A stretch of DNA of 64,000 bases, from contig CBFFRP010000406.1 in NCBI GenBank assembly GCA_965644295.1, positions 310,001 through 374,000 of the forward strand. Direction: 5' to 3'. The DNA comes from Paraphysomonas bandaiensis (Eukaryota > Protista > Chrysophyceae). The notes under the pieces are model-generated. The model did no database searches, was not told where the DNA came from, and was given only the letters and a program-made list of their open reading frames with translations. Below are positions 11,789 through 55,429 of the stretch, in pieces. Position 1 is the stretch's first letter. Every line of letters starts with the position of its first letter. Made by a program: the position numbers and the translations under genes.

Positions 11789-12242
11789 CCATCAGTAGTG
11801 AATGTCGTATTATTAGAAATAGGCTTATCAGAGTCATTTCTTAACTCTGATATCCTAACGCTCCGAAACTGCTATTGCGTCACCACAAGCACCAAGGTGC
11901 GACCACTTTCGCTCTATCACTCAAAAGCAAACGCAGTGAGTGAGCAGAATGTTGATATATCTGATGTCTGACACCTAAAATCTGCTGACTTCAGAATTTT
12001 TTATTAGAGGTTGACTTCAGTAGGAAGCCTAGTACCCACGGATACCTGTTTATTCGTCAAGGCCCAAAGACATCTACACAAGTGATACTAATTCGTGTCC
12101 CTTGCACCACACAGACATTTGGCTATGAGTAGGCAGAACAATATCTGCTGACTATATATTTAACCATAGTTTCTCGGAGAAATCTCTCCGGTACTTAACC
12201 CCCAGAACACCACGAAAACGTGCGAGTCCGACTTTGTTGAGG
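11789..12242 (+). mobile_element. Unclassified ~450-bp non-coding dispersed element, copy 1
   Basis: CCATCAGTAGTGAATGTC ... CGTGCGAGTCCGACTTTGTTGAGG. Reverse-complement homolog of the copies at 12899, 29593 and 43382. Confidence 0.8.
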
Positions 12243-12898
12243 ACTCCTCAGAAATTCACATGTTATTTTTTGTACACACTCTTCTGGACACCACACAAGA
12301 ATTAGATCATGGACAAACTTTCGCTTCAAAAATGGTTTTCACTAGTCCACAGCCTTACATTATTATTGTCTACGTTAAACGAAGATGCTTCTTGGTTCAA
12401 GAACACAAGCCAGCCATTAATGGCCCATTGCCCCATAAATGGTAGTCCAGTTCCCAGCAATTATAATGTCATAAATGAAAAATGTCCCGGAAATTATAAT
12501 GGCCACAAAGGCCAGCATATCTGACAAGTTCAACGCGACACCCTTGGGCGTAGTATGTGCTCCTGCAGTCAATGAGAGTGAAATGTGAAATGTTGATTAG
12601 CAGGAAAAATACCTTTTTGACCGATTTTGCATAAGATTATATGAATCCTAGTTATTTAGAATAGCCTATGTTTATACACTTGAATATATGCTCTGTTGAA
12701 CTTTGTATAAAACGTGAGCAATTATATTCTGTAATCTATGCTAACTATTTTCTGATTGGTGACAGTAAAGGAATTAAATAATATAATAGTAGCAAGTTGA
12801 AATGAATAATCAATTATAAACAATTGAGAGTGTACTTCTCACATTTTAGATACTGATGCCAAAGGTTGAAAAAATCACAAACATTTATTATTGAGCCC

Positions 12899-13322
12899 CC
12901 TCAACAAAGTCGGACTCGCACGTTTTCGTGGTGTTCTGGGGGTTAAGTACCGGAGAGATTTCTCCGAGAAACTATGGTGGGCGGCATATATATAGTCAGC
13001 AGATATTGTTCTGCCTACTCATAGCCAAATGTTTGTGTGGTACAAGGGACACTAATTAGTATCACTTGTGTAGATGTCTTTGGGCCTTGAATAAACAGAC
13101 ATTCGGTAATGGGCCCACCTTAAGGGCATCCGGGGTATAGCTCTGCCGGCCTGCTGAAGTCAAGCATCCGGGCTCTAGTGCACCTTAAAGACAGAAAGCG
13201 AAAGTGGTTGCACCTTTTGTAGCGCAAACAGCTTTCGTAGCTCAAAATAGTAGATATCAGAGTTAAGCGCTAGTTAGTTAAATTATTTTGCTATACATTA
13301 GTTCTGACTCTTACACGCCTAT
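12899..13322 (-). mobile_element. Unclassified dispersed element, copy 2 (inverted relative to copy 1)
   Basis: Begins CCTCAACAAAGTCGGACTCGCACG on +. The first ~80 bp are an exact reverse complement of the end of copy 1. Confidence 0.8.
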
Positions 13323-13511
13323 AATAGCAATTTGCTAACACGCCTAAGATGGCGAACGCTCCAACCGAATAGCCTGATTTCGGATACATTGCATACGCAT
13401 ATAGCTATCTTCACCACTTACAGTAGTATTAGTTCCTATGCTCGGAGACGACGCGGCAACAGCCGCTGGGGGCACATAACTAGTAGGTGGAGGATCATCC
13501 GCAGATAGTGG

Positions 13512-13639
13512 ATTACTTTGACTTAGGCCTAACCTATATTTTATAATTTTATAATGATTATATATAATCAGACATTCACTACTATATTATTGACCCAACT
13601 CAAATTATAAAATATAGGTTAGGCCCCAGTCAAAGTAAT
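13512..13639. mobile_element. MITE-like fold-back element with ~38-bp inverted repeats
   Basis: ATTACTTTGACTTAGGCCTAACCTATATTTTATAATTT ... AAATTATAAAATATAGGTTAGGCCCCAGTCAAAGTAAT (2 mismatches). Confidence 0.6.
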
Positions 13640-14541
13640 AAATGATTTAACCTGGTAAACTTTTGTTTCACACTTAGTCGTAAGTTACTATAGCTACAAC
13701 ATTACGACTGACCAAGTAATATTAGTTGTTTGGAAAGCATGAAACAAGCATTCAATAAGAATTCATGTCTGTATACTGTATACGTAAGGTGACTTCGACA
13801 TACGTAATACAATAGTTTCAGGGCAATACGCATCAATATAAAGCCCAGAGTTCTTCAGCCTTGTTCATATTTAAGTTCTATGAATATTATCAATCATTCC
13901 TCCTCTCCTTTCTTTTTGTTTTTTGTTTGAGCATTCCTATGTCCGTAGAAAAAAGTGCTTTCAAAACACAAAGATTTTGATTCATATATCTATTAACTAT
14001 AATAATTTTATCTTTTCACAATATGTTCTAGCAGAAGCATATGAAGTAGAGAGATTGTAGTATAGAGATTGCAGTATACATTATACATTAGTGTTAAAAA
14101 CATAATAGCTGGCTATTACTTAAGTATATAACGTATAACGATGGATTCCTTAGAACTAGAATAATATTCTCACGAAGTGGAGATGCTATGTTCGTGAAAT
14201 ATCAACCATTGATCTGTGTTGGAGTGGCTGCAAATTTAATCGATTACATAGTGCCCCAATTACTTGCCAACTTTATTGTTACACAGCGTGGATACTATAT
14301 ATCTATATATATTATTGTAACGCACATCTATGAACAATGTGCACAAGTGGACCGTATACCGTATAATATTGAGTTTTGTTGAAGTACATGCCAATGTTTA
14401 TTCTAGAAAGGGATAATAATTATTGAACAATAATTAGTTTCGCCCATGACAACATGAGAGTACAATGACAGTATATATATGTCCATGTCATACTGACACA
14501 CGACTACAATTTTTCACTGTGCAACGTAAAGCATTGAAGTT

Positions 14542-16119
14542 TTAGTTTTTACCGGTTGGGATTCTGAATGACTTTAAAAACCGACCAAGATTGGAATGCA
14601 TCTCCATGTCGAGCTCTTCAGTACCAGTACCAGCAAGATCTGCCTCAGGAACACCGTTATAATCCTGGACAGCGGTTGTCGGAGCAGCTGAGGTAACCTC
14701 ATCTGTGGCATCAGCGGAATTGGGATTTGTTGCTTTCAAACTTTCTAAATCTTTGTATTGCTCAATCTCAGAGATCGCAGAGGCAGTGATGGGGAACCAA
14801 GTCGCCTTGGAGAATGAGGTAACGACCCAGCTGAAGTGAGCTAAGCCGGTCATCTCAGTAAAGAGACATACCTCCAGTGTCAAACGAGGACCAAAGCGGT
14901 TCATAAACAACCAAGCATCCTGGTTTCCCAGCAACTGGGCAGGAAGCTGTGCGAAGCAAAGTATGTTGAGAGCAGTTGGGAACCCCAGCTGAACAAATAC
15001 GAACCAAACACCGTCGTTAATTCCAAGGTGGGATATCGAAGGAAAGATTGTACATTGGTTAATAAGAAAAACAACGAAAATAACGAAAAATTGTCTTCCG
15101 ATCAAAAACCGACGGACATTTTTCTCGTAAGTAGCCCTCTTCATTAGAGAGTAGGCGCGGGGGTGAGTCTGAGCATACGGCTCTGGATCCTTCGCCTCTG
15201 CAACCAATATAGCAACTTGAAGTCCCTCAAGATGGGCGAGAAAGAGTATACAGCAACAGAAAACGATAAATACAGCAATGTGTGGAACAGGCAACACGGC
15301 CTGGCCAGTCCAAATGCCCCACATTAGGTAGGTCATGTATGTCAGGATAACGCAGCACGACACCACATATTTAGCTCCTTCCAAAGCATAGTCCTGAATT
15401 GTGAGCTCCTTCTGGTGTCTTTTCGGCTTCTGGTCAGTGATGAAAACAGTATGACGGAGAATAGTGATAAGCATCCAAGCAAAATGCGTGCAGATACCAG
15501 TGATTTCCAAACCATAACACAAGTACAGAGTAGAACAGGATCCATACAAGTTCATAAACTTCCAGGGATCCTTTGCTGCTAGCAACTGAGGCTGAAGTGA
15601 ACCAATGGTAGTTACAACCATTGCACCTGGAAGACCAGTTTGAATGAAAATGAACCAAATCACAGGCGGGATTCCCAATTGGGAAATCTCAGGAAAACTT
15701 GTTACTTGAGCCATAAGAGTCATCACGAACACTGTGAAGAACTGACGACCGACAAGAAATCTTTCCACATTATTCCCTTTCTTCACTGAACTGATTAACT
15801 CAAACGCACGAGGATGCGACTCGCGGTATTTCTCAGGATCTGTGTGCTCGACAGCTAGAATGGCCACTTGCAGACCCTCTAGATACGCCACAAGTGTCAT
15901 ACAGAAGAGAAAGATCAAGAAGTGGGCAATAGGAGGTCCAGGCAACACTGCTTGATTCGTCCATATGCCCCATAAGATATACACCACATAGGTCAGGGTA
16001 AGCCCGGACGATATGATGTATTTGATGTACGTGAAGATTATGTCCCATATTGTCTTCTGGGGAGTGCCAGAGTATGCATTCACATCATCTCCATTGGTCA
16101 CAACTGGCTGAGGACTCAT
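14542..16119 (-). CDS. SIT: Silicon transporter (SIT), full-length two-repeat form, intronless, 525 aa
   Basis: Two homologous membrane halves, each with LEGLQVAIL (EGXQ) and RFL(V/I)GRQFF (GRQ) motifs, which is the diagnostic SIT signature. Confidence 0.93.
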   Translation of the reverse strand: MSPQPVVTNGDDVNAYSGTPQKTIWDIIFTYIKYIISSGLTLTYVVYILWGIWTNQAVLPGPPIAHFLIFLFCMTLVAYLEGLQVAILAVEHTDPEKYRESHPRAFELISSVKKGNNVERFLVGRQFFTVFVMTLMAQVTSFPEISQLGIPPVIWFIFIQTGLPGAMVVTTIGSLQPQLLAAKDPWKFMNLYGSCSTLYLCYGLEITGICTHFAWMLITILRHTVFITDQKPKRHQKELTIQDYALEGAKYVVSCCVILTYMTYLMWGIWTGQAVLPVPHIAVFIVFCCCILFLAHLEGLQVAILVAEAKDPEPYAQTHPRAYSLMKRATYEKNVRRFLIGRQFFVIFVVFLINQCTIFPSISHLGINDGVWFVFVQLGFPTALNILCFAQLPAQLLGNQDAWLFMNRFGPRLTLEVCLFTEMTGLAHFSWVVTSFSKATWFPITASAISEIEQYKDLESLKATNPNSADATDEVTSAAPTTAVQDYNGVPEADLAGTGTEELDMEMHSNLGRFLKSFRIPTGKN

Positions 16120-16598
16120 TATGGAAGACTTCTGGTTATTGGTATCACTTCAACCGACACCAAGCAATAGAAACTGCCCTTTAATCGTATGTATGTACCA
16201 GCGAGCGAGAGATATTTTGATTCTCTGATGCACTTGAAATTTTCGTGTGTGGTGATGAGAGCAATCGAGATATTTCAAAAGAGTGTATGCGATATTTTTA
16301 TATGGAATTGCGGCCTCTAGAGAGTGTATGCGATTTTGAGGAATCTTGGACTACAGTGACGTACGCAGCAGTATACATCACAACGGTTATGCCACCCAAC
16401 AATGATACTCTGTATGAGTTTTTGACGACTGCCTGCACTGTACATATACACACTGTACATACATACATATGGATATATTTTTGTAGATTTCATACATATT
16501 TGAATTTTAAAAATAGTGAAGGCTCTTGCTGTGATGGCAGAGTGAGACACCCGGAGTGGATACTTTCAAGAAAATAGTAAAGTAAGGATTCGTCGAGT

Positions 16599-16850
16599 AT
16601 GGTAACATCATCTACCAGTGGTCGACGGGCAGGTGCCCCGAACTACAAGAAGGCAATTGTCTTGAATATAGTCAATGACATCCTTCCCTCTTCTAGTCTA
16701 GACTGGGTAACTGTGGCAGAGAGGTCAGATAGAAGTGCATACACTGAATATATCAATTGTACAGATATAAGATTGCTGCCCAAGAGACTGTTGATCGTGA
16801 AGGTCCTGATATGAAGAGATACTTCATCCAGAAATTGTGCAACAATGGGA
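16599..16850 (+). pseudogene. DUF6818-like (Myb/SANT-like) gene fragment broken by an inversion
   Basis: GRRAGAPNY..VLNIVNDILPSSSLDWVTVAER..RDCDREGPDMKRYFIQKLCNNG. The continuation RKPTG is found only on the opposite strand in the inverted copy. Confidence 0.55.
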
Positions 16851-16938
16851 CGAATACGATTGATACCACTCGTCCCACTGTTTCCAGTGGGCTTGCGCCC
16901 ATTGTTGCATAATTTCTGGATGAAGTATCTCTTCATAT
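16809..16938. repeat. 41-bp inverted repeat (fold-back) with internal 7-bp hairpin
   Basis: ATATGAAGAGATACTTCATCCAGAAATTGTGCAACAATGGG / CCCATTGTTGCATAATTTCTGGATGAAGTATCTCTTCATAT (1 mismatch). The loop contains CCCACTG-TTTC-CAGTGGG. Confidence 0.9.
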
Positions 16939-18393
16939 ATATAGCTTAAGCTCTATAAACAGTTTATGCATATAGGATAGTTTGTACAAGTAGGCCGGAG
17001 GTGTCTTCTAAAATAACATAAATCTGCATAAATCCATGTGTTTATGCAGCCTATTTTATGCAGATTTATGTATTTGCGTAATTTAGGTAGTCACCCACTA
17101 ATAACGCCCACCTCGTGTACATTTTCCATCGTATCTTCATCACTGTGGTCTGGAATAGTCTGTGCTGTGTTTGAAACAATGTAAAGAGAAAAGAGTGACG
17201 TATTAAAGATATTATCATATCTACCTGTGCACAGTAGCAGATAAGCAATACCTAGGCCACACACTACCTAGATAAATGGTAAAAAAGTAATGCATGAAAC
17301 AACACTAAGTCACACTAGAAAAACACTGTAGAATCTATTGGCAACCGACAAACACCTGTTGAGTTCTGCTATATGAGAGCAATTGAAAGCTGTAGTTATA
17401 AGGTATTTAAATTACTGTATTATACAGTTGTAGTCTTGTTAATCGTATTATGAGAAGTGATATCATGACGATGTAAGATCGTACTAGAAATGAGTGGTAG
17501 TAGAGATGACGTGATATATTGCTTATTATATTTATTATAATCTTCTCTTATCTTAACTTGATTAATGAGTGAATACACGTCCAGTTAACTTAGTAAATCA
17601 TCCAATTGTGTCATAACATGACAACACCAAACTGATCCTGAATTGATGTGGAGAAACCAGTGACAGAGAAAGAGTCTTCTATTCTACGTGGAGTGTGGAG
17701 TAAACAACATATCTTCAGATATGCTATGACAAAATATCATATGACAAAATATGCATTCAACCTTCATTGAGAAGAAATCACCTTAGACTGCTTAGGAAAG
17801 CCGATTATTGTTCTGGTGTAGAAGTAAGGTCGACGTAAAGCAGTGAAGAATATTGAAGAGATATATGCTACCAACATTTGAATATGCTGGTTACTGAAAG
17901 TGACTTTAGAAATTTTGCAACGTGCATTCACGAAATCTGAAACTTTACTTATTTATTTACTTTCTTGCTAATTTCTTTTTAGCTTCACTATTACTACTTA
18001 CGATATACACAACGTCGTAAGCCCAGTAGTTACCCGAACGATATATATTACCCAGTATATATATCTGTCTTCTGTCTATACCGGAGTATTAATTATCTAC
18101 CTTTTTATCCAGTGTCTTTTGCATAATATCACTTCTTCAGACCACAATTAGCAATGACATACACTTACATTTCTATGTACATTTCATACCTAATGTAATT
18201 AAGAATGACCTCAAAGCAACAATATTGCACTTCAGTCATATAGTACTCAGTAGTAAAATAAATCTTGTTGAGTTATACACAGTGACAGTGGAATAAATGA
18301 TTAGTCAGATATAAAATTAATACCATAGAGGATGATATCACCGATAAGCCAGTCATGCAAATATTGCAACTTTTCACCTGTCACATAAATTAC

Positions 18394-19434
18394 TCATGTT
18401 ATAACTAGGGATCTTGGTTTCGCATTGTAAATTGGGGCATATGTATTATACAGCTTCTCCAGTGCGGCAACATAAATATCCATACATTTCTCGACATCTT
18501 TATCCGTTGGGTTTTCAATATGTGGGAGGTGTATTGGCTCTCCCATAACCGTTGTCACACCTTTACTTCGAAGTCGGGTGGTGCTATATACAAGTGGTAA
18601 GGATATACCAAAGGTTTTCTGAAATGAATTTCTAAGGTAGGGAAGGAAGGGTATCTTCGCAACTACATCGAATGGAACTTGAGTAAAATAATCCACTTCG
18701 TTAAACGAATAGCAAGGCACAACTGGTACGCCATAACGTATAGCTAGGCGAAGAAACCCAAGTTTCCGCTTGAGGTCCAGCCAATCCACATCGGGATTAC
18801 AATAAAGGCCTTCACGTGCCCCACCTGGCACCACGAATACACTCCAGCCCTTCGCCAGCCACCGTTCGGCATTGAACCGCGAGCAGTCGAGAACACCTGC
18901 AGCGACTAAAATATCCCTGAATCCTGGTACTAAAAAGCAAGATGATGCAGCTATAACTATTCTGGATTCTGAAAGAGCAGGAAAATGCCTGGAGAAATTG
19001 GAAGTTTCGCTGGCAATATTGGCAATAGTTCCGAAAGGAATAATTCCATGGGGATGAATTCCAACGATACATTGACTATCAATGCTTTTCGTAGGATGCA
19101 ACTTGCAATTGAAGTATGACTTAAAAATTTCACCAATAAATGACGAACGAAATCTTCGGCTAATGCGATGACCATAATACTCAGAAAGGTCACAGTAAAA
19201 CGGAAGATAACACAACATTGCCACAGCACAAGACCATGATATTTGAGACACTGGTAACCAGGCTAGTGAAAAAAAGTAAAGTCGTATAGCTGCTAAGAAT
19301 ATGGAGGATTGTGGCCCTCGCCCTCGCAGGAAACCAAAGTGCTTGCACGCAGCCAGACCGCACAGAGTATAGCTTGTATACAGTAACGGAAATAACTCCG
19401 TTATTCTCGACCTCGTCTGCCAGGAAAGGGACAT
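18394..19434 (-). CDS. DGAT2: Diacylglycerol/monoacylglycerol O-acyltransferase, DGAT2 family
   Basis: HPHG catalytic motif, VPGGARE, RKLGFLRLAIRYGVPVVP, VMGEPI and N-terminal TM segments. Intronless, 346 aa. Confidence 0.9.
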   Translation of the reverse strand: MSLSWQTRSRITELFPLLYTSYTLCGLAACKHFGFLRGRGPQSSIFLAAIRLYFFSLAWLPVSQISWSCAVAMLCYLPFYCDLSEYYGHRISRRFRSSFIGEIFKSYFNCKLHPTKSIDSQCIVGIHPHGIIPFGTIANIASETSNFSRHFPALSESRIVIAASSCFLVPGFRDILVAAGVLDCSRFNAERWLAKGWSVFVVPGGAREGLYCNPDVDWLDLKRKLGFLRLAIRYGVPVVPCYSFNEVDYFTQVPFDVVAKIPFLPYLRNSFQKTFGISLPLVYSTTRLRSKGVTTVMGEPIHLPHIENPTDKDVEKCMDIYVAALEKLYNTYAPIYNAKPRSLVIT

Positions 19435-19802
19435 TACTATGCTAGTTAGCAGATGGAGTGAGCTATCACACTGCTATGACATGCATGTATAGTCTACGGA
19501 GATGGAGGTGTGGAGGAGATTATTTGACGCAACGACCGGGAGGAGGAGCGAGATATTTAACAGATACAAACATCCGTATCACGGGCCTCAGTCCGTTTCA
19601 GAGTATTAACATCCGTTCCGACATCGAAAGTGTATATGAATATATTCCGTGAACACCTGAAAACACTGAATTTTCAGCATCCAGTCCTCAGAAAATCAGC
19701 ATAATCATGGTACAGTGTGTTAAGTACCCGCACAGTGAGTTCCTGTGCATATATCCATCCTACCCAAAGAAGCTCCAACTCCTACCCTGGAAGTATTGCC
19801 TG

Positions 19803-22645: not shown

Positions 22646-23191
22646 AGTGTACAGTCGGCATAGGTGGTTATAGAGCTTTGTATAATATTAATTGTACTAT
22701 ATAAGTTGTACAGCGGAAAAATGAAAAGGATTATAGCATCGGTACACGGTACCATTACTTCTAACCGTAAGAGATGTGTAACGACATTAAAATGTTAAAA
22801 AGTGCTATTCATTTCCTAATTGATGAATACTTTTCCTGCCACTGCTAAGCGATGATGCAAAGTTACGCTTGTAGTTAAAAACCAGTTGTATGTCATGCGC
22901 ATTTCTACTTGCAATTTAATGCGATAGGGCCTACGCAAATTCAGATGTCTTATTACTTCATCACGTAACCAAACAGCGAAACATATCGTAATATAACTGG
23001 GTAAGCCAATATGTCATAAAATATATCGACACACCACGGGAAACATTGTAAAATGTATATCATATATTCACAGATATGAAACCTACGGCGGATTGTAGGT
23101 TTACTAGAAATACACCAAAGTTTAGTATATATAAGAAGCGAAGATGTTGAAATAGTAGTACGTCTAACTCTTAATAAACATGCGTCTTAAT

Positions 23192-27930: not shown

Positions 27931-29592
27931 ACCGTATAGTGGTGAAGACCTAGAAGCGGGCCGGTTGGACTCAACGACTAGATCGCATCTCTAGATCTGA
28001 TGCTCTCACCAAACAACTCAACTGATGGATGGTGGTGAAGGACTCCATTATGATCAACCCGATTTGCTTGTCAATGAATTCACAAACTTCTGAAGATAGC
28101 GCAGTTGCATTAGAGAGACACAGATAGTGTGAACTTAGCAGGCGATGACGAGGGTGTAGCAGCAGTTGAAGGGCGCGAAGGCGATCTGACTGTTACACTA
28201 ACCGAATCATTAACACTTGAGACGCTTCCATTTTATGCAGTGTAGTTATATCTATTTAAAGCAGTCAACCATGTTCAGCCGATATGATGATCTGCCATTG
28301 CATGGAGCATCGAGGGAAACTGCAAGTGGTGTTAAATTTTTTACAGTCTATATGAACGTAAAATCATACAGCAAATGATTACTGTATTCACTATTATTGA
28401 AGGTTGTCCTGTTCTTAGTATGGGTTGTGAGGTCTCTGGTTTGCATATATCTCGGATATATGCAGTGTAGACATTACTCGCTAAAAAGCACTGTCATATG
28501 CTCAGATAATATGTGTCGTGTTTCTCTGAGGGAAGTTCAAACTGTGGAAACAATGTACTCTTTGCATGGTCTAATTTGATTGACGCTGATTTAGTACGAA
28601 TAAATGATGGCAAAGTAGTAACTATTTCAGCAATCAAAAGAAAATTTGAATGCTTGTATTACGATGCATAGTATATCTCTCTCACTATTCATTAACCCGG
28701 CAATCTCATGTCCTGGTGATGCTGGAGACCTCAGATACAGTTCCCCGTCTCATGTGTGATATGATTCTCTATTCCACTGACCTCTCTTTCTATATATACA
28801 TATACAGACGAACTTCTCATCATATATGGGTGTGTCACTCTTACCTTTGCATTGAAAAACTTCATTCAAAGGTTCTTTGTCTGTATTCCTTAAGTATTTC
28901 TCGTTTTCAGGTTTTAGTGAGATCTGCCCGAAAGAATCGTCCATTCCAAGGGCTATATTCCTTCCGCACAGTAATGTCTTCAAACTCTCTATTCATTTTT
29001 CTTCATTGGACTCGTTAAACTATGGGATATGAGACCGCAAATGCTACCGTATCGAGTTCTGTCTACTTATTACATTCAGAGAAGTATTATAAGGGGTTAA
29101 TTCACCCGTTTTTTTCAGCGTAATAATCTGCCAACACTCTTTCTGATATACAGTCTCTTATTTACTTCCTTGGTTTAGTCTTCTCAGTTATATAGCCTGA
29201 CAGTTACTATTGAATACCTATCATGAAGTGCAATAAGTCGATCTTTCATCATAGACTCTCATGCTATTACTTATTACTGTGGTTTTTATTTATAAATTCG
29301 GTAGAAAAACGTTTGCAACTATTGTAGGCAAAATCAAGCTCCAATTTCCTATTTGATAATATAGTGCTTTCTTAACTTCTTTAATCATAAGTTATCTGTG
29401 ATAATAACTTGTGCTGCAGAACTAGACGAAATGCATCACTTAAGTCTCAATGGGCAGTGCACCTATCAGCAGATTCACTCAGTCTTTTTTTCTACTCTTG
29501 AGCTGATTGCTTAACACCACTGCACAATATATTGTAATGAACACCTGATTTAGAGTGTATAATGAACAGGCGTAATGACGAATGACGAGCAC

Positions 29593-30094
29593 CCTCAACA
29601 AAGTCGGACTCGCACGTTTTTGTGGTGTTCTGGGAATAAGTACCGGAGAGATTTCACCGGGAAACTAACGTGAGCCACATATGTAGCCAGCAGATATTGT
29701 TCTGCCCACTAATAGCCAAATGCTTATGTGGTACAATGAACACTAATTAGTGTCTTTTGTGTAGATTGGGCCTTGACGAATAAACAGGCTTTTGGGAATG
29801 AATGGACCCACCTTATTGCTTAAGGGTATCCGGGGTATTGAACTGACTGCTGAAGTCAAGCATTCGGGATGTTCACCTCAAGGACTAAAAAATTCTGCAG
29901 TTATCAGATGTCAGGTATATCAACATTCTGCTTGCTTACTGTGTTTGTTTGAGTGATACAACGAAGGTGGTTGCACCTTGGTGTTGAGGTGGGGCAGAAG
30001 CAGCATTCGTAGTGTTAAATAGAATTAGGATATCAGAGTTAAGAACTGCCTCTGAAACACCTAGTGCTAATAATAAGATATTCACTACTAATGG
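29593..30094 (-). mobile_element. Unclassified dispersed element, copy 3 (longest)
   Basis: CCTCAACAAAGTCGGACTCGCACG ... TAATAAGATATTCACTACTAATGG on +. Collinear with copies 1, 2, 4 and 5. Confidence 0.82.
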
Positions 30095-43381: not shown

Positions 43382-43861
43382 CCTCAACAAAGTCTGACCG
43401 CACCTTTTCGTGCTGTTCTGGGGGATAAGTACCGGAGAGCTTTCTCCGGGAAATTAACACGAGCCACATATGTAGTCAGCGGATAATTTTTTGCCAACTC
43501 AAGGCCAAATGCTTGTGTGGTACAATGGACATTAATATAAGAGTAAAGAGTATCACTTGTGTCTTGTGTAGACATCTTTGGGCCTTGATGAATAAACAGG
43601 CATCCGGGAATGACCCCTCCTCAAGAGCATTCGGGGTATTGGGCTGCCTACTGAAGTCAAGCATCCGGGCTGTTCACCTCAAGGACTCAAAAATCCTGAA
43701 GTTAGCAGATGTCAGGTATATCAACATTCTGCTTGTCCACTACGTTTGCTTTGATTGATAGATACATAGTAGGATATCAGAGTTAAGCACTAGTTAGTTA
43801 ACTTGCAATGCTAAATTAGTTCTAACTCTTATTGATAATAATAAGACATTCACTACTACGG
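43382..43861 (-). mobile_element. Unclassified dispersed element, copy 4
   Basis: CCTCAACAAAGTCTGAC-CGCACC ... TAATAAGACATTCACTACTACGG on +. Confidence 0.8.
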
Positions 43862-44446: not shown

Positions 44447-45361
44447 ATGGGACGGATGTATTACGCTTTCTGGGTGACATTTGTCCTTGCACGAACGCCA
44501 TGTCTCTTTAGCCAGAATGAGTGTTATTTAACAGAAAGGTTTGCGAATGAAATAGTCGTGTTTTGTCGTGATTTTGTTTACAGTCCACCGAGGGCAAAGG
44601 GAATTGCCATCAGCTTCTGTGAAAGCATGTCCCCAAACGAAAACTGTTGTGTACCTGCTTTTGACGAAGAAATGAGAGAAGAATTTAACTTACTCACTGG
44701 GACATCTGATTTGTGTGTGTCCACTGTGACAGAATCTAAGCTGGCGCTGCATTTCTGGTTTTGTTTTGGATGTTCTGATCAGCAGGTACGACTTTGGCTT
44801 ATTTTATCGTTATGCCTACCTCATCTGTGGGCAGCCTAAAGCGTTGGAGCATAAGGGCACCGTCAATGACGACGATGGTGGTCCATACGAACAGTATGAA
44901 ATTCATGTATGCTCCGATTTTGCAAAACTTCTCTACCCAGAGAACTTCGACGACTGCGGACTCATCATCCCTGGTGAAAGAGGGAACATATGCTCTGATG
45001 ATGACACTGTAATGCCTTCTACATATTGGGGAAAAGGAAAGGATGGAGCGGAAAATTTTTTGAACGATGACGTTGGAGGCAAGCCACCTTTATTTACAGA
45101 TGGTGATACAGAGAAGTTTAAAGTCGTGGTAAGGAAAAGGCGTCGTTGTCCGAAATGACAGTGCATACATATCTGAGCGGGTGGTGTACATTTTATTTTT
45201 ACATACTTCTTATATTAATATTCACTAACGTTGGTGCATGTATTCAGATTGACGATTCAGAGGGATGCTACAGGAGTGGAGGGAGCATGCTCTGTATGTC
45301 GTGGGGTGTAATAATTTTGTCTCTGTTACTAGTTATTTCTGTAGATATAGTTGTAGTTTAA
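44447..45361 (+). CDS. Folate-receptor-like Cys-rich secreted protein with C-terminal hydrophobic (GPI or TM) tail
   Basis: Signal peptide, FC..ENCC..DLC..FWFCFGCS..IHVCSDFAKLLY..FDDCG (folate receptor/NPC1-N cysteine pattern), and C-terminal WGVIILSLLLVISV. Confidence 0.65.
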
Positions 45362-46680
45362 AGGTATTATAGCTGGATATGACATCTTAGATGTGAATTG
45401 AGTACATAGGGATATAATGTATGTTCTCGAAAAGGGGAATAGGGTATGTTAAATTATTATTGCTATTTCTAGCGACATTCTATTTTAAGTACTGTGTTCT
45501 TAGTATTTGCAAAACGCTGTGGGTAATCCCTATGTTGTTTGAGAGCATAGGATGCATTGTAGTATAGCCTTATAGCCCCGTAATTAAACCGGTAGATAAT
45601 AACCAACCACATGATAATGACAGCTCATATGCATAATGGCATATGCATGTCATGGGAATAAGCAACATTTTATCCTTGGGATAATAAGGAGCATTGTTTC
45701 TCATCCCTCAGAGTCCGTGGTTAAATAATGCTATATTTTTTAACTATAAGTGCAAAGATATCAGCATAACTTCCTTGCTACATCATAGGACGCAAAATAC
45801 AGTTTCTCTACATGGGTTTATATTTATCTGATTATTATTCGCACTCAAACGCAATGTATATATTTTATTATTTTAACTGAAAATCATGAATTAAGCTCAT
45901 TTCACATCAGGCAGCATATGTGCAACATATAATACTATTCAAGGACTTCTTTGTCTACTCTTATATATAAACTGAGAAATTACTTCCTTGTATTCAGATT
46001 CGGGTGAGTAGCAGCTAGATAACACTTAGACACAAGAAAGTTAGATCCTAATTAAACAATATAAAAAGGTAATAGTCGTATATAAAAATGCGCCGTACCA
46101 AACTCACAGTGTCAAAGTATCGACTCTGAATGTTTTAATATATCAGACTATCAAAATAGTTTCTACATTCACTACGCATTCTGTGATTAGCATCACGTCA
46201 GCAAACGGTTAGTACTTACAATAGAAATGAAAAGTAACGGAAGCTTCACAGAGGAATGACCAACATTAGTATAATTTAAGCTTTTCTGTATTTGTGATGA
46301 CTGAAGTTATATAACTTGCCCTTTACAGTGCTCTTGATACGTGAAGCAATGGAATGACCTTCTCCTGTACATGTATATCTACTGCTGTATACACATGCCC
46401 AGCTCGCTGTCCACGACGCGGTCATTTCTACATAATATATATTTAGCTTTTTGGCTATTCAAGATACGGAATTCAAAATTTGAGCATACTTCACACAGAT
46501 TCCTTTGCAGGATACTTTTTTTGAGTGCTGTGTGTAATTCTATATGCAGCCCTACGTGTATGATATATGGAGAATAAAGAATAAGAAGAAGTCGAAGTGA
46601 CGAGAGACATACTTCATACTTCCTAATTGATAAGACAGATATACGTATATATACCATCAATGGGTTGAACGGTGCTGATC

Positions 46681-49125
46681 ATGTCATCTGCACCTACTCA
46701 ATCTGGTAAGGCAGAAGCAGTGGATAAATTACGCACAGAGAGTCCGTGTCCTCAAGGTTCGTTTGTGTTGTTTTATTGTATAGAGCTGATCGCTTATTTA
46801 GGAATAGAGTCTCCTTCGAAAAATGGGATTCTGTCCACTACAAAGTCCTGGTGTTCGTCTCCATTTTCGAATCTGGTTGCGCTCAGTCCAGATGGGAACT
46901 CGTTTTCGTTTTCCCTGACAGATTTTTCTCCTGGAATGCCATTTTCCTCTCCGCGGTTAAGGTTTAATACTGATCATGGCAGCCCTCAGTCCTCATCTCG
47001 TGCACACGGAGACCAGTGTTCTTTTTCTCCCTCTTTGTTTTCTCCGTTTAATAAATCCTTGAAGTCGCATAAATTAGACAAATTATTTGATGGAGACTTC
47101 CTTGGGTGCGACTCGATTATTGATTCTGCCACCAAGTGCAACCCTGAGGGTATAGGATTATTGTGAGTAAATTATATATACGATTTTTTATAGTGTATAG
47201 TGCGTAGTAAGGCTTTAAGGAAAACTTGTGTTTACACTTATCTGAATGTCCTGGAAACTATGCTAATGTATTTCGGTGCAGTCAATTCGGCCTGCGAAAG
47301 TGTGACAGTTCCGATATTCACACGAGAGACAATATTTCACATTTACTCGGCACTCTGGATACGAGGTCTGACTGCATGGAGCTAGATACCACGAGTGGGG
47401 ATTCTCTTTTTACCGAGGATACGTCCAAACAGATTTTTGGAAGCCCAATGAAATGCAAGGAGAGTCGTGCCGTTGAACCTCGCGACATAACTACATTAGA
47501 TCAATCTCCTTCCTTCCGTCCACCCTTGTCGTCGTCAAAGAAGTCAATTGCTCCTCCGCAAACGACCCATCCTCCAGTGAAATTACCATCCATCAAGCGG
47601 GCACATGTAACTCCTGGCAGAAAATCACACAACAAGTTTTCTAGTCCGGCAGTGCTGAGTAAGGCGAAGCAACCAGCTAACATGTCACCAATGGACTCAA
47701 AGAGTCGATGTAACTGCAAGAAATCTAAATGTTTAAAATTGTGAGTAGGAAAGCGTATTCTATCACTGCTGTACAACATATGGATGGTGTATGCGAAGCA
47801 ATGTTCAATTTACATGGCGAAGTGATTGTAACTTGGTTCTGTGTTTATGACAGGTATTGTGAGTGCTTTTCAGCTTTACGGTATTGTATCGATTGTAACT
47901 GTACGGACTGTAATAACTGCAAGGAATATGAAGAGGTAAGTGCATGCGTATTTAGCGTACAGTACAGCATACGATATTTGTACAAATTACGTAAGGATAT
48001 ATGATGTTACCGCGAAGTATAGCAGAAAACATGAGACATGCCTGAATTTATGCACTATTGTGTGATATATGGTACGAATATTTAGTTCAGTTTCGACATG
48101 GGGTATCGCATAGATAATTTGTCATGACTAGTCTGACATAATATTGGTGACTCAGGTTCGTAGTGAGGCAATACAGGCGACTAAAGAGCGCAATCCCATT
48201 GCTTTCCACTCAAAGGTTAGTGATAAAAAAGGCCACCTGGCGGGCTGCAACTGTCAGCGTAGCCAGTGCTTAAAGAAGTATTGTGAGTGCTTTGAAGGAT
48301 CAGTACACTGCGGAACGAACTGCAAGTGCAAATCATGTGAGAATTACTCCGGATCGGCGGTATGTACATCATATATATACACGACGAAATTTGTAGTTGT
48401 ATTTTAGCGGTACTGATCAGTTGTATTTAGCTTGTCTAAGCGAAATATATGTATTATGAGTGTTATGTTTTGTATTACCGCTTCTTGTTAAATGTGGTAT
48501 CTTATTTGTAGAAACTTGAAGCAGCCAAAAATACAGCTCGGCAGAAGCGCGAGCGCTATGCTATAAAGTCAGAGTCGTGTAATACTTCTTCGGTTCCACC
48601 TAAGACAACTCATCTATCGACTACGACGTTGACTACCCTGAAGAAGTCGCAAGAACGATCTAGTTGCGTTTCAGGTGAGAGCAGCAGTCGAAACGGTTAT
48701 GATTTAGGTGGAGGTCAAGGTATGAGCTAGGGTCGTTTGAATGCATTGTGCCCTATATGTAGAATACTGAGTTTTGTATTGTTTTGGTTCTAATGGATGC
48801 ACATTCTCCGACTTTATTATTGTTCTGCTCATCTGTGATTCTCTCAGTCCCAGATAGTCTGTCAGAGCACTCTACAGTCGAGTCAATATCTTGCAGTATG
48901 AAGGATAAATTAGATGATGATTCCTCCCCATTCAAAAAGATACGAATAAGTAACGAGAAGGAGTCAGAGCCGAGGTATCCTTTCTTTGGCCCCCAATGTC
49001 CGAGAACAACTAAAGTTACTGCTCTGTGTTGTCTGGAGTACTTGGACGGCCCCAGTCTGTATGCTGTGTCCGTGGTGAATAAGCTCTGGAGTCAGGCTGT
49101 CATGGACGATGCGTTGTGGGAGTAG
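46681..49125 (+). CDS. Tesmin/TSO1-like CRC (2x CXC) DNA-binding protein, LIN54 family, with F-box-like C-terminus
   Basis: CNCKKSKCLKLYCECF..C.DCNC.DC.N, linker ERNPIAF, and GCNCQRSQCLKKYCECF..CGTNCKCKSCEN. Confidence 0.9.
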
Positions 49126-49417
49126 GTATCGTGTAGTTTGTTCTTTTTATTATATTCTTCGTACACGGGTGTTACAATATTTGCCAACAAAGTAGACTGC
49201 AAACATTGCGGAGGAAATATAAGTCGTGACTGGGTGCCAGTCAGTGTGCACTAGTACATTGCTGGAGAATTATAGTTTATGTGTTTGTAATGCCGTATCG
49301 TAAGATGTACAGGACGTGGTGTTTTTAGTTGGTGATGTGTGTTCTCCGTTTATAAACACAGTGTAGCTAGCGATGAATGTGGTAATCAATGCATTGTCTT
49401 CATATTTTCCTTTAAAC

Positions 49418-50680
49418 CAGGCTTGTAACAATGAATTGGATTTCCAACACATCATACATACATACATACACATGCATGCGTTTGCTGCAAATTAACGACA
49501 AATCTTGAGCATATATAAATTTCACCTAATCTTATAGTTTATTACAGACAGTACCATCTAGTTCTCATTATTGCTTGCGCTTGTAACAGAAGAGCAATAA
49601 CTGTACATACAAATGAATATTAAATTATTAGGTTTTAAAAGTGATAATTTCAATTATTATTGGTAAATGTTGTCAATTAATTGCAATTATTTGGCTGGCT
49701 AAATTATATATAGCAGTAGTGAACATCTGATTTAGCAATAGGCGTGAAAGTGTCCGAACAAATGTAGCAAAACAATTTCTTAATTAAGTTGTGCTTAACT
49801 CTGATATCCTACTATTTGGCGCTACTGTAACGACTACGGGTGATTGAGTCTTGCCATCATGACTAACACATTATAACCTCTTAAATCACCCGTGCTTGTC
49901 ATTCCCAATTTTGCTACACTATGAAAGGTGAACTAGCCCGGATGCTTGACTTCAGTAGGCAGCCTTTGAGGTGGGCCCATGCATTCCCAAAAGCTTGTTA
50001 TTCGTCAAAGCCCAAAGGCGTTCTACACTCTAGTACACTCCCCTGTACTACACAAGCATTCGGCCATGAGTGGGTAGAGCATTATCTGCTGACTATATAG
50101 GCGGCTCACGTTGATTTCCCGAGAAATCTCTCCAGTACTTATCCCCCAGAACACCATGTAAAGGTGCAAACCCATTATCTGTTAGCATAGAAGTTTGGCC
50201 ATATATGATATATGTACACAGTCAAGTCATCATTTTACGAATCATAATTGTGTGAGACAGTATAAGGGTCAGTATACACTTTAACTTCAGCACGCAAGGT
50301 TATATAACATATATATATGTTCCGTTAAATCAGAAATGTATACGGCAGTGCTATTGAACCAAAAGAATGCTATGTAAAATAATATAACATGTAAAAGGTC
50401 GTTGGCACGTTGGCACCGCTTCGAAAAAATAGTAATAGTAGTGTAAGTGACGTTATGTGTATCCGTTAGGCCATTCGTGTACTTAAAGAAAGCGCAAAAA
50501 AGCACGCATCAAAGCATTTGTACAGCACTATCAATGCTAGTGAGAGGTTGTTTAGCAGGGCTAAGATTGTTATAACTGATTTTCGCTAGCGAATGACACC
50601 TAAACACCTTGAAATGTTGATATTTCTGTGTGAAAATCGGCATCGTTGGGATGAGATTATAGTTCAGAAAGTTATTCTAA
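49418..50680 (+). mobile_element. Second, degraded copy of the hAT family, interrupted by insertions
   Basis: TIR-like CAGGCTTG--TAACAATGAATTGG at 49418. 49631-49712 is the reverse complement of 43245-43316, homology resumes at about 50169, and the transposase tail STINASERLFSRAKIVITDFR*RMTPKHLEMLIFLCENRHRWD lies at 50510-50680. Confidence 0.8.
49714..50167 (+). mobile_element. Unclassified dispersed element, copy 5, nested in the hAT relic and lacking the last ~19 nt
   Basis: CAGTAGTGAA..TTTAGCAATAGGCG..TTAACTCTGATATCCTAC..CCCGGATGCTTGACTTCAGTAGGCAGCC..TACTTATCCCCCAGAACACCA. Confidence 0.78.
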
Positions 50681-51209
50681 ACTATAGCAATATAATAAGA
50701 ATAGATGTCATCTTGGACAAAGACGACATCTGTTGCAGCAGTAAAAACATAAGATTGTGAAAAAATACGTGTATCGTAACAATTTAGGATGCTTATATTG
50801 CAGCAATAAGATGTAATTGTACTGATAGTCCTTCCAACCTGTTTATGATGGTTAAATCGTATTAACAAATCAGAGTATTCAAAGGATTAGGATAGTTTTG
50901 GGGATTGTTTGGACAACATACTCGAAAGAGTCTGATAGATAGGCTAGTATACAGATAGGATCAAGAACTTGATACAGATGAGGAGTTGATGGAGGTGCTA
51001 CGGTCAATATCAATGCAATAAAACTACAAACCAGACAGCCCACGATTCATGCAAGGAATAAGAAGGTTCCGATCGGGTCGACAAAACTATTTTTAGTTAC
51101 TAATGACAAGTTTTAGTAATACGTGTGATTTTACGAGATATGATACGTATAGTGCGATGGCATATAACATCAATGTGATGAGAAAAGCAAGCAAAGAGGA
51201 CATTATGTA

Positions 51210-52788
51210 CAGTCAGTTCGCGTTATGGTGGATGGTGTGTACCATAAGCCATACTGTCCACCACAACGGCACCATCCACGATTAGAAAACCCGGGTTTTT
51301 GCTTCAAATAACCAGGTTTTTATAAAAAACACAGTTTTTGTCTTATAAAACCATGGTTTTCTACTGAAAACCCCTAAGTAAATGTTTAAAATATCGTATT
51401 CCACACTCTAGTTTGTAAAACTTTCTATTATCGCACTACAGATAAATAATTATGTAAAAAGCCTTGTTATTACGTGATAGGAATGCGCTGAGCTCTTAAC
51501 TACGTTGTTATAGTGTTGACTTAGGTCTTCGGACAGAGAAAAAATGCTGTATCGTTCGTTGTGACGAAGATTGGGTGCGCTCCTGTGAGTAGCATTTAGT
51601 CAATTCACAAGCGTTCTTGAAGAAATTGTAGTGAATAGCAGGAGCATTTTCACAACTACTTTGCATGGTGAAGTCGTATACTACACGCATTGCATCATGA
51701 AATTGATTCAAAGTTACTATAGATGAAGTGGTAGTAGTATCAACACTCGTTTCAGTTAGATCATCATCATCATCTACCGTAGCTGTTAGTGGAGAAATAG
51801 AAAAAGCTTCGAAGCTCTCCTTGGCTTCCTCGATTTCAGCTTCTACGACCATAGGGTCTCAGCTTTGGCGGGAAAAAACTAGAGTAATGTACGAAGGATA
51901 TAAGGATCTCTCAAAGTCAACATGAGAAGAGCAATTGTCCAGCAGAATAAGACATTTCTGTGATCCATATCGGCGCTTATACCAAGGATCAAATACCGAA
52001 TTGATCCACCATACAGTAATACGTCTGTCAAACCGTATAGTCTTACTCAATTCTGCCTCGCAGTACATTCCGTTGGGGGTTTTCCCATAATACAGCCCAG
52101 TTTGATCGGCGTTGAAAATTCTCTGTATTGGTACTTCATTAATTTCACATAATTCACCGAACTTCTGTTTGAACTCTTATAGCAACCGCTGCGTCAGCAT
52201 CGCTGATTTCATTAGCTTCTCCGTGAAGATGCACATGAACATAATTGTTCCGACTCTTCAACACATTACGTAGCCAACCAGATGAAGCTCGAAAAGAACT
52301 CAGCGCTTCTTCATCATCCGCATAGATTATCTATACAGTACAAAAATGTTAAGTATGAGCATATACTTGCTTCTTAGTATTGCTAACCTTTGCATAGTCT
52401 TAGCCTTCTGCTTCAGAAATTGCCAGCTCAACCCGCATTTATCTACTTTGTAGTGCTCCTGGCGAAAATTAATGTACTCAACAAGTTTTCTCTCCACTTT
52501 AGGAAATGAACCCTTCCTTTGCATTCATCTGACATCGCTACATACAGCAGACGAACAGATGCAGTGATGTAAGTATATGAGATGACTATATGATAATTAA
52601 TTGTACTTTTCTGTATATTGCCTACCAATTTTTTCACAACAATCCACCAAAATAGGGATTTTTATTTAAAACTATAGGTTTGTATATAAATCGGGGATTT
52701 TATACAAAAATCCCCGTACCAAGCCTAAATTCATCCACTATAACGGCGATATCCACCATACGTCGTCCACCATAACGCGAACTGACTG
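51210..52788 (-). mobile_element. pogo/Tigger (Tc1/mariner superfamily) element with internally deleted, frameshifted transposase
   Basis: Perfect 23-bp TIRs CAGTCAGTTCGCGTTATGGTGGA with TA on both sides. Minus-strand fragments FPKVERKLVEYI..LKQKA, FRASSGWL..LHGEA, IFNADQTGLYY and CLILLDNCSSH (CENP-B HTH plus DDE_1). Confidence 0.93.
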
Positions 52789-53279
52789 TATGTATGTATG
52801 TATGTATGTATGTATGTATGTATGTATGTATGTATGTATGTATGTATGTATGTATGTATGTATGTATGTATGTATGTATGTATGTATGTATGTATGTATG
52901 TATGTATGTATGTATGTATGTATGTATGTATGTATGTATGTATGTATGTATGTATGTATGTATGTATGTATGTATGTATGTATGTATGTATGTATGTATG
53001 TATGTATGTATGTATGTATGTATGTATGTATGTATGTATGTATGTATGTATGTATGTATGTATGTATGTATGTATGTATGTATGTATGTATGTATGTATG
53101 TATGTATGTATGTATGTATGTATGTATGTATGTATGTATGTATGTATGTATGTATGTATGTATGTATGTATGTATGTATGTATGTATGTATGTATGTATG
53201 TATGTATGTATGTATGTATGTATGTATGTATGTATGTATGTATGTATGTATGTATGTATGTATGTATGTATGTATGTAT
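52787..53279. repeat. (TATG)n microsatellite, about 123 perfect units
   Basis: Uninterrupted tetranucleotide tract read directly from the sequence. Confidence 0.98.
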
Positions 53280-53364
53280 AGAAAACTATGCAGAGAAGTC
53301 CTTAAAGTACCACTACATTACCAGCCGGTTGTCGATTATTGTAAATACCAAACCTCTTGCTACA

Positions 53365-54763
53365 ATGTCTGCTGAGGGTGTTCAGTTTTGGGAGAGTCTA
53401 CTACAAGACAGTTCAAAGCGACTGAAGCAAATAGAGGGCACACTGCTGCTGGTGGGTGACAGTGAGGTGGGGAAATCAGCTCTATTGAAAACATTTTGCG
53501 AGAAAACAGGGTCCCGTCCTGAGAAAGAAATAGTGTCGTATGATTACTTCAATGTATATGATGAGGACCTTGAGTCTTCGTCGAGTGTTAATGTCTGGAC
53601 TCTCGATAGTAATACTTTCAGTTTTTTCGCTGACTATGTGTTGGATCATTGCAGCTTGAATAAGGTCATGTTATTATCTTTGTATGCGTGTATTGTTTGA
53701 TTTATATTTCAGTTGGTTATAGTGATAGCTCTGGACTTATCGAAAGACAATTGTAAGGCGTCGTTATGCAACTGGTTAGAAAGAACACAGGAGAAATTAA
53801 AAGAATTTATATTGAATAACGACAAGAAGTGTGTCACTGCAGAAAGTATTCCAATTCTTGTTGTGGGATGTAAGTCAGACTTACTTCAAGTAGACGAGGT
53901 TGATGGCCTGAAACGTGCAAAGCTGCTTCAGGGAGAACTTCGATCTATTTGCCTTTCAGGTTAATTCGTGTCTTGATGTATGTACCAACTAGCTAAAAGT
54001 GTTGTACAGTTCGAGCGGGACTAGTCTTTACCTCTACAATTCATGATGACGCGCATGTAAACATTGAAGCGTTACGCAGTCACTGTTCTTGTTTACTGGC
54101 ATCTGACTTCGATGGTGCGGTCGCGCGAAGTGGAAATGAAATACAGGTACTAGAAGGCAGCATGAGGTCGACTTATGTAATGTCTCGTGTAGGAAGGAAC
54201 CACAGATGTGTTCATTCCAGTAGGTTCCGAGGATACTCCTGAATTAATATATGCTGCAACTGGTGTGAATGTCACAACTGTGTCGTCTGCATCCATGAAG
54301 TCGAGCGCATCTCATCAATCAAAAAACGAAAAGGCTGCTCAAAATACTCAGAACTCTGTGGAGAACTCTTTGAGTGGCGCTGCTCTTGAGCAGCAGGAGG
54401 AAGAGTGGTTGCAGCAACTAATGGACAGTCTTGGTTCGCCTCCACAGCTGCCCGCATCTGCTGACTCTGAAAGTCTTTCTGCACTTTCAACCCCGTCACT
54501 TAGTGATGTAAGTACACGTCGCCCTGTAATCTGGCTTGAATGAACTGTAATATATTTAGTCTAAAAGTCGAGGCCCGCGACGATCAAGCGTTGCTGCTCC
54601 AACGTCCGCTGGCGAAAATGCTACAAAAAAAAGTAGGAAAGTTAGCGTCTCGAATAGTACAGGTGGCAGCAATACTGATACGATGCAAACTGGTGACGGC
54701 AATAAAGCAGTGCGTGGGTTCTTTGAAAATCTCCTCACTACGAACGCCTCAAAAAAGTCTTAA
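53365..54763 (+). CDS. DYNC1LI: Cytoplasmic dynein 1 light intermediate chain, ~5 exons
   Basis: P-loop LLVGDSEVGKSALL, YDYFNV..VNVWTLD, VIALDLSK, IPILVVGCKSD, LRSICL..AGLVFTS, VFIPVGS.D, and C-terminal amphipathic helices EEEWLQQL and VRGFFENLL. Confidence 0.87.
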
Positions 54764-54876
54764 TTCTCACGTGTAGTTAATGCCATATGTAAAGCACACA
54801 TTTTCTACATTAGTACGAGCTTCGATACTGTTACTCTGCAATTGTAAAAATTGTGTTATGCGTTCTATATGTTAAG

Positions 54877-55112
54877 GTCTTTTTATTTAGCAATAGGCGT
54901 TAAAAACTCGTTCCGATATAGTGGCTAGTTGAATGCTAGATCTACTAGTTAGACCTCTACCCATAACTAATCAGCACAAATTCTATTGTCCTACTATTTA
55001 GCGCTACAGAAGCTGCTTGTGCGTCGCCGCAAGCACCAAGGTGCAACCACTTCCGTTCTTAATGTTGTTTGTGAGTTTCGCCCTGCTCGTGTGTCTGAGG
55101 ACTCACTGGCGC
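54877..55112 (+). repeat. Dispersed repeat subfamily copy, paired with 2523-2758
   Basis: Collinear and highly similar to 2523-2758. Confidence 0.9.
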
Positions 55113-55325
55113 GTGTTGTCCGGGGGTCTCCCCTTGGGATAAGGTTCCGCCTGGCTCTGAGGTACAGGGTTCTGTATTAAGGTCCTGAGTGTACCGAGTA
55201 CTACTGTGCGCTGTACACGTACACCTTAACCTTGCATTGTTGCAACTCTACAGCTACTATGCCGCAACTTTGTTCATTACCAGCAGCAAACTTAATGCTA
55301 TAAGAGTTAGAATATAGTTTCCTGC

Positions 55326-55429
55326 CCTCAACAAAGTCGGGCTCGCACCTTTTTACTTTTTTTTTCGTGGCGTTTCGGGGGTTCGGGGATAGGGTTAGGA
55401 TATACTTCTCCGGAAAACTAACTTGAGCC
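55326..55429 (-). mobile_element. Terminal fragment of the unclassified dispersed element
   Basis: CCTCAACAAAGTCGGGCTCGCACC...TTCGTGGCGTTTCGGGG...TTCTCCGGAAAACTAAC. Confidence 0.7.

Follow-up and report, generated by a model that had tools for sequence, protein, structure and literature searches.

The window analysed here, a stretch of 64,000 nucleotides from the chrysophyte Paraphysomonas bandaiensis (contig CBFFRP010000406.1, positions 310,001 to 374,000; G000:C406:310001-374000 in our numbering), contains several copies of a dispersed non-coding repeat with one sharp end. We found that this family is very probably a recently active, non-autonomous retroposon without long terminal repeats (non-LTR), which resembles short interspersed elements (SINEs) and carries a tail derived from a long interspersed element (LINE). 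The assignment is based on the anatomy of the element, the homology of its tail and its target-site duplications (TSDs), all of which are read directly from the copies. The original prediction had interpreted the sharp end as a possible 'ghost' omegaRNA locus of an IS607/Fanzor-type DNA transposon and, as a fallback, had suggested a new structured-RNA retroelement. The fallback was essentially right in that the element is a non-autonomous retroelement; as a kind of retroelement it is not new, because tail sharing between SINEs and LINEs and ribozyme-headed retroposons are already known (L1Tc/NARTc, SIDER, R2 SIDEs and Schistosoma elements; PMC3185411, PMC4035085, PMC3414825, PMC8501958). What is new is the host lineage and the combination with a tail-donor LINE that lacks the head.

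A large family with a constant 5' part and variable tails

The assembly comprises 62.5 Mb with approximately 40 % G+C. A blastn search of the window with three of the originally reported segments as queries recovered all eight of them at about the same positions. Two of these (2523-2758 and 54877-55112) are 5'-truncated LINE 3' ends and not members of the family because both contain the end of a LINE open reading frame (ORF). The shared sharp terminus was confirmed: the 19-mer GAGTCCGACTTTGTTGAGG is found four times in the window with at most two mismatches, compared to 0 expected, and a fifth, more decayed terminus is present at position 43382. In the whole genome, this 19-mer has 1067 matches with at most one mismatch on hundreds of contigs (0 for the reversed control), and a 502-nt copy used as the query produced 2610 first-look candidates. 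Given that the counts in both the window and the genome greatly exceed the controls, the family and its sharp end are real, far beyond chance. The family consists of about 1,000-2,600 copies, or roughly 1-2 % of the genome.

The true strand of the element is the reverse complement of the one on which it was originally described. On this strand, the head (approximately nucleotides 1-90) and the body (up to approximately nucleotide 365) are fixed and always start with CCCTCAACAAAGTCGG, and they are followed by a tail of which at least three subfamily types exist. The body is built of tandem units of 27-30 nt that contain GCATCCGGG and CACCTYAAGG and correspond to the direct repeats that had been noticed previously; five CCCGGATGC repeats were found in the window, compared to 0.09 expected. 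The hairpins and the AGTAGTGAATGTC end that had been reported along with these repeats are likewise present. Older copies are approximately 10 % diverged, retain TSDs only in a decayed form and show a uniform conservation of approximately 90 % along their length. A young subfamily of 1.19 kb, to which six very similar first-look candidates belong (259 candidates with at least 40 scored copies, 97-100 % identical), is nearly identical to the old consensus in the first 365 nt and possesses a distinct 820-nt tail ending in ...AATAATCAGATTTTC. The longest open frame in this form has 88 codons, so that the element is non-coding, as predicted. The 5' end is invariant and directly abuts the TSD, with no untemplated bases at the 5' junction. 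The 3' end of the young copies is ragged, with ...GATTTTC followed by nothing, A, AATA, AATATA or AATTCAA.

Target-site duplications of variable length

No TSDs had been recognized originally, but they are perfect in all five young copies for which both ends were found, with lengths of 11-15 bp (AAGATAAAGTACA, CAGTTGATTTGA, GTATCGGAACG, CGAAGTCCTCATAAT and ATGCTAGGCCTAT). Of 32 copies, 7 have an exact TSD of 10 bp or more, compared to 0.1 % of 980 mismatched control pairs. Furthermore, comparison of a filled site, in which a young copy is inserted within a LINE copy (locus L065), with the corresponding empty site (locus L062) revealed a 16-bp duplication: TATCCCCAAAGTAATT (L062:5373-5388) is found a single time at the empty site and flanks the insert at either end in L065. 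The same comparison defines the exact ends of the element as CCCTCAAC...CAGATTTTC. Overall, TSD length varies between 10 and 16 bp. Variable TSD length is a signature of target-primed reverse transcription, the integration mechanism of non-LTR retrotransposons.

The tail is derived from the 3' end of a LINE

A scan of the genome with the RVT_1 profile identified several groups of LINE-type reverse transcriptases (RTs), of which two, denoted LINE-A and LINE-C, were studied, with the families sampled sparingly. LINE-C (read from loci L062, L063 and L064) is approximately 9.4 kb long in total and contains a single giant open frame of approximately 3,000 codons with an RVT_1 domain, an APE domain upstream of it and L1 ORF2p as the closest solved relatives. 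Dozens of LINE-C copies are 98-100 % identical in the 5', RT-proximal and 3' regions, and the 3' terminus ...CAGACATTCACTACT (at L062:~8077) is found in at least 40 copies with 98-100 % identity. This LINE end, ...GCCTATTGCTAAATAATCAGACATTCACTACT, is the reverse complement of AGTAGTGAATGTC, originally described as the other end of the repeat. Positions 363-443 (81 nt) and 459-493 (36 nt) of the 493-nt consensus of the SINE-like element match the 3' untranslated region (UTR) of LINE-C at 94 %, and in the long-tail subfamily 192 nt match it at 79 %; all these matches are on the sense strand of the LINE. Approximately 80-190 nt of the LINE-C 3' UTR make up the tail of the element. The homology on the LINE sense strand identifies the AGTAGTGAATGTC end as the 3' tail and, consequently, the sharp end (on the reverse complement, CCCTCAACAAAGTCGGACTC...) as the 5' end, which reverses the polarity assumed in the original prediction. 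The tails of the LINE and of the SINE-like element both fold into a stem UAGUAGG/CCUAUUG around a variable hairpin, followed by a single-stranded terminus of approximately 22 nt (...AATAATMAGACATTCACTACT in the LINE 3' UTR).

Apart from terminal motifs of 16 nt, the tail of the young 1.19-kb subfamily resembles neither LINE-A nor LINE-C at the protein or DNA level, and the only motifs in common are AATAATCAGAYWTTC and GCGRCRAYGCACAAGC. A LINE partner of this subfamily was not found, all 40 scored matches being full copies of the SINE-like element, and this counts against the explanation as a LINE-dependent retroposon. A copy of the element adjoins both LINE-A (locus L061) and LINE-C (L062) downstream, and each LINE was considered as the owner of the sharp end. 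Both were rejected because LINE copies across the genome stop before the sharp terminus, so that the downstream copies represent neighbouring insertions.

Taken together with the TSDs, we infer that the LINE protein acts in trans on the RNA of the SINE-like element. It would bind the borrowed 3' tail, nick the target DNA and reverse-transcribe the RNA in place, and such target-primed reverse transcription would leave TSDs of 10-16 bp.

Two other classes of elements have to be considered at this point. The 'ghost' omegaRNA locus of the original prediction, whose guide would come from flanking sequence past TTGAGG, has superficial features in common with the family, namely a structured, sharply ended non-coding terminus and G-rich junctions. 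It conflicts with the variable TSDs of 10-16 bp and with the LINE 3' UTR at the opposite end; no copy contains an ORF, let alone one for a nuclease, and the TNB domain of the Cas12f1/TnpB type (PF07282) has no matches in the genome, whereas 8 of 14 control genomes were positive. The comparison of the filled and empty sites refutes this reading, and we consider it extremely improbable. Equally far-fetched, in our view, is a derivative of a DNA transposon (miniature inverted-repeat transposable element), a Helitron, a Crypton or a solo LTR, with which the family has only its dispersed, repetitive and non-coding nature in common. There are no inverted repeats at the ends, CCCTCAAC... and ...CAGATTTTC or ...CACTACT, which conform neither to TG..CA nor to TC..CTRR; the 3' end is ragged, and a TSD length that varies from 10 to 16 bp is typical of target-primed reverse transcription and not of a transposase.

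Several additional features of the two LINEs were noticed. LINE-A, the second active family, ends with ...AATAATCAGACTTTCC at position ~5227 of L061, with at least 40 copies that are 92-98 % identical; its terminal motif is similar to the one with which the young 1.19-kb copies of the SINE-like element end. Just upstream of the APE domain, the LINE-C frame contains a Pfam SET domain (PF00856; L063:1802-2404, minus strand, in the LINE-C copy at G000:C440:3934-13290, minus strand), with an E value of 5.6e-9 and a score of 36.8 bits against a cut-off of 22.4; a single copy was read across the SET stretch. This stretch also shows weak similarity to the KMT2C/KMT2D and viral vSET structures (E ~0.005). 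For a LINE ORF, a putative domain of the histone methyltransferase type is unusual, and no description of a SET-type domain in such an ORF emerged from a literature search. On contig C15, the 5'-truncation point of a LINE-C copy is adjoined by a 187-bp repeat (L062:3980-4166), of which four further copies with 99 % identity are located on contigs C439, C169, C380 and C42. Many LINE-A and LINE-C 3' ends have fragments of the SINE-like element, in either orientation, no more than a few hundred bases away (e.g., G000:C296:27843-28149, C28:50604-50850 and C25:47377-47597), which suggests clustered or nested insertion.

The head as a candidate HDV-like ribozyme

In its lack of coding capacity, short length, dispersed distribution, LINE-homologous tail and variable TSDs, the family agrees with SINEs; it differs from them in the head, which is not of tRNA, 7SL, 5S or small nuclear RNA (snRNA) origin with an internal RNA polymerase III (Pol III) promoter. 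ARAGORN predicted no tRNA in the head or body, Rfam showed no similarity to tRNA, 5S, 7SL or snRNA, and no A or B boxes were seen in the head by eye. We accordingly use the name SINE-like.

The predicted fold of the head would fit a different module. Ribozymes similar to that of hepatitis delta virus (HDV) are defined by a nested double pseudoknot with the strand order P1-P2-P3-P3'-P1'-P4-P4'-P2' and cleave at the first nucleotide of P1 (PMC4908430). Both the minimum free energy (MFE) and the centroid folds of the head contain P1 (1-6 with 40-45) and P4 (53-59 with 64-70), and P2 (14-16 and 18-22 with 80-87) and P3 (23-25 with 33-35, 7-nt loop) could be added by hand. The possible helices of the consensus head, of 6 (P1), 5-8 (P2), 3 (P3) and 7 bp (P4), would produce this nested order. 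The first nucleotide of the predicted P1 is C1 of CCCTCAAC, the base with which the element invariably begins and at which the insertion in L065 has its exact boundary; this is a coincidence of position only. With a loose double-pseudoknot descriptor anchored at +1, the head passes, as do 7 of 5000 dinucleotide shuffles (0.14 %) and 241 of 42,594 start positions in the window (0.57 %); these chance figures are optimistic because the thresholds were chosen after the sequence had been seen.

The head was further compared by eye with L1Tc, using the primers printed in PMC3185411 (L1Tc +1..+5, CCCTG, and +27..+77). Common to both are the CCCU start, UGGUG just before the 3' strand of P1, a 7-nt J1/4 ending in AGUA, and the P4 hairpin. 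After P4, J4/2 reads GAAGCUAA in L1Tc and GAAACUAA in the head (GAARCUAA motif, by eye), and the candidate catalytic C75 lies within GAAACUAAC in the head, compared to GAAGCUAAG in L1Tc. Across J1/4 and J4/2, 11 of 15 positions agree, for which a hand-calculated binomial with p = 0.3 gives ~1e-3 before the choice of register. On the strength of the fold and these motifs, we slightly favor the interpretation that the first ~87 nt of the head constitute an L1Tc/Pr77-type, HDV-like ribozyme that would cut exactly before base 1. Longer host read-through transcripts would then self-cleave at base 1 and yield the sharp 5' end of the RNA, a step predicted from the fold and the shared motifs only. Both ends of the element would in that case be structured RNAs, a LINE-type stem-loop tail at the 3' end and a possible ribozyme at the 5' end.

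A number of results weigh against a ribozyme. Rfam searches with the head and body yielded no match at E<=1 or E<=10, with the HDV-like, CPEB3 and drz models included, and the folding energy of the head is ordinary (MFE z = -0.86). In 34 heads, no compensatory change was seen at any of the 24 pairs, and covariation did not rise above that of shuffled controls, a null result of little power because the copies, now dead, descend from a single master lineage. The uniform conservation along the old copies gives no sign of an extra constraint on the head. Structurally, P1.1 would have at most one A-U pair (that of L1TcRz is said to have only 1-2 bp; PMC3185411), a 4-nt linker separates P3 from the 3' strand of P1 where HDV has none, and J4/2 is long. 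In addition, the 5' end of LINE-C is different in sequence from the head and fails the fold descriptor, and it was rejected as the source of the head for these reasons. Separately, a scan of metagenomes with a 16-mer of the head produced at least 120 chance matches, and the sole extended one (L154, 35 nt) diverges at once.

The same LINE-dependent retroposon could instead possess a head that is an internal promoter, either Pol III or a Pr77-like Pol II promoter, which fixes the start of transcription at base 1 with no self-cleavage. Such a promoter explains the sharp 5' end equally well and agrees with the missing Rfam ribozyme match, the missing covariation and the ordinary folding energy. 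It is less compatible with the lack of tRNA, 5S, 7SL or snRNA similarity and of visible A and B boxes, and chance would seldom produce an HDV-like topology with its anchor precisely at +1. Pol III in particular fits poorly with the length of 0.5-1.2 kb, with the conserved T4 run (TTTT) at +26..+29 and with the additional T4 runs of the 1.19-kb form. We regard a promoter that acts without cleavage as rather unlikely. In L1Tc, the same 77 nt are both promoter and ribozyme (PMC3383444), so the two roles may coexist.

Another possibility is that the element is an internally deleted LINE derivative, similar to SIDE or NARTc, with a head that represents the 5' end of an autonomous LINE elsewhere in the genome. 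L1Tc/NARTc and the R2 SIDEs work in this way (PMC3383444, PMC3414825), and the genome contains several further LINE-type RT groups whose 5' ends lie outside those read. Against this stand the different 5' end of the tail donor LINE-C and the size of the element, all sampled copies with both ends defined being ~1.2 kb or shorter; moreover, among 100 listed head sites (contigs C1-C80), inspected by hand, none lies upstream of an RT match on the matching strand. This origin of the head appears improbable.

If the ribozyme interpretation holds, several consequences would follow. The case for a SINE of a stramenopile-like protist being headed by a Pr77/L1Tc-type, HDV-like ribozyme, a type hitherto characterized in retroposons of trypanosomatids, with a tail-donor LINE that has no ribozyme, seems to us about evenly poised. 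That a self-cleaving module would replace the Pol III promoter and combine freely with different LINE tails is, likewise, a conjecture with as much to be said for it as against it. An element of this type would rely on host read-through transcription and self-trimming.

Copies in the window

The copies of the SINE-like element and the LINE fragments in the window are listed in Table 1, together with the LINE-A locus.

Table 1. SINE-like copies and LINE-type sequences (window positions, unless another locus is given)
Feature	Position	Strand	Description
5'-truncated LINE-C-type copy	2515..2759	-	ORF end and whole 3' UTR; 85 % identity to the last 246 nt of LINE-C (L062:4168-8077, positions 3665-3908)
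SINE-like copy 1	11794..12242	-	full length, decayed; 78 % identity over 2-492 of the 493-nt consensus
SINE-like copy 2	12898..13583	+	longer-tailed variant; head 12898-12985; ends ...AATCAGACATTCACTACT at 13583
SINE-like copy 3	29592..30090	+	full length (head, body, LINE-type tail); 86 % identity over consensus 1-493
SINE-like copy 4	43382..43858	+	full length; consensus 2-365, 422-450 and 465-493
SINE-like copy 5	49715..50187	-	old; first ~20 nt of the head damaged or replaced
5'-truncated partner-LINE-type copy	54871..55199	-	last ~330 nt; 79 % identity to positions 3576-3906 of the LINE-C 3' half
SINE head fragment	55325..55429	+	~105 nt; 70 % identity to the consensus
LINE-A, second active family	L061 (G000:C426:354000-362000), 139-5227		APE and RVT_1 in ORF 139-3282; overlapping second frame 3207-5138

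In copy 1, the head (5' end CCTCAAC...) occupies ~12133-12242, and the tail, which matches the LINE-C 3' UTR, finishes with ...GACATTCACTACT at 11794. Copy 2, originally delimited at 13322, continues to the end given in Table 1 and is flanked by a decayed TSD (12885-12897 and 13584-13596) with 11 of 13 bases identical. Within its tail, approximately 230 nt (13330-13560) match neither the consensus nor the sampled LINEs and are either an insertion or another tail variant. Copy 3 is flanked by a possible TSD read by eye (AATGACGAGCA and AATGGTGAGTA, 8/11), and its head carries one disabling change in the 3' strand of P1 and one in P4. In the head of copy 4, the candidate catalytic C is mutated (GAAATTAAC). 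Copies 1 and 2 are arranged head to head with 655 bp between them, are 93 % identical over the first ~200 nt and have the subfamily-specific changes CACGTTTT and GAGAAACTATGG in common; they may have originated by a local inverted duplication instead of two independent insertions.

Implications and comparison with known systems

With this assignment, a repeat that accounts for approximately 1-2 % of a protist genome is explained by a recently active SINE/LINE partnership, which replaces the Fanzor/IS607 reading. If the head is indeed an L1Tc-type HDV-like ribozyme, the ribozyme-headed design would extend well beyond trypanosomatids, and a ribozyme could take the place of a SINE head that bears a promoter and be exchanged among different LINE tails. 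In practical terms, the family, the truncated LINE partners and the young copies with perfect TSDs should be masked or annotated in the genome, and all of these offer polymorphic insertion markers.

The resemblance to the omegaRNA ends of IS607 and Fanzor elements is limited to one non-coding, structured, sharply bounded terminus; the SINE-like element differs from them in its TSDs, LINE tail, lack of a nuclease and opposite polarity. Much closer are the stringent SINE/LINE pairs, in which tRNA-derived SINEs carry the tails of CR1-, L2- or RTE-type LINEs. The modular structure of head, body and an 80-190-nt LINE tail, the lack of poly(A), the variable TSDs, the many copies and the subfamilies with swapped tails are all found here. 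Unlike in these pairs, the head has no tRNA, 5S, 7SL or snRNA ancestry and lacks recognizable Pol III boxes, and one active subfamily is, at 1.19 kb, long for a SINE.

With regard to the head, the R2 SIDEs, the Schistosoma Sm-alpha hammerhead SINE and the twister-variant elements provide a precedent for self-cleaving RNAs that free the retroposon RNA from a co-transcript (PMC3414825, PMC8501958), a release for which the head described here would be a candidate. The R2 SIDEs insert specifically into rDNA and have both ends derived from R2, whereas the present element is dispersed and its ends are of different origins. In NARTc/L1Tc, SIDER and RIME/ingi, which carry TSDs, cleavage exactly at base 1 is performed by an HDV-like ribozyme (Pr77/L1TcRz) made up of the first ~77-88 nt (PMC3185411, PMC3383444, PMC4035085). 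The trypanosome LINE and its parasite have the ribozyme head and a poly(A) end in common; in contrast, the tail-donor LINE of the stramenopile-like host has a different 5' end without such a fold, poly(A) is missing, recognition apparently occurs via the structured LINE 3' UTR, and cleavage by the head is only predicted. Like NARTc/L1Tc, the element is a short, non-coding retroposon with TSDs that is presumably mobilized by a LINE, and the CCCU start and the UGGUG, AGUA and GAARCUAA motifs, as judged by eye, are common to both.

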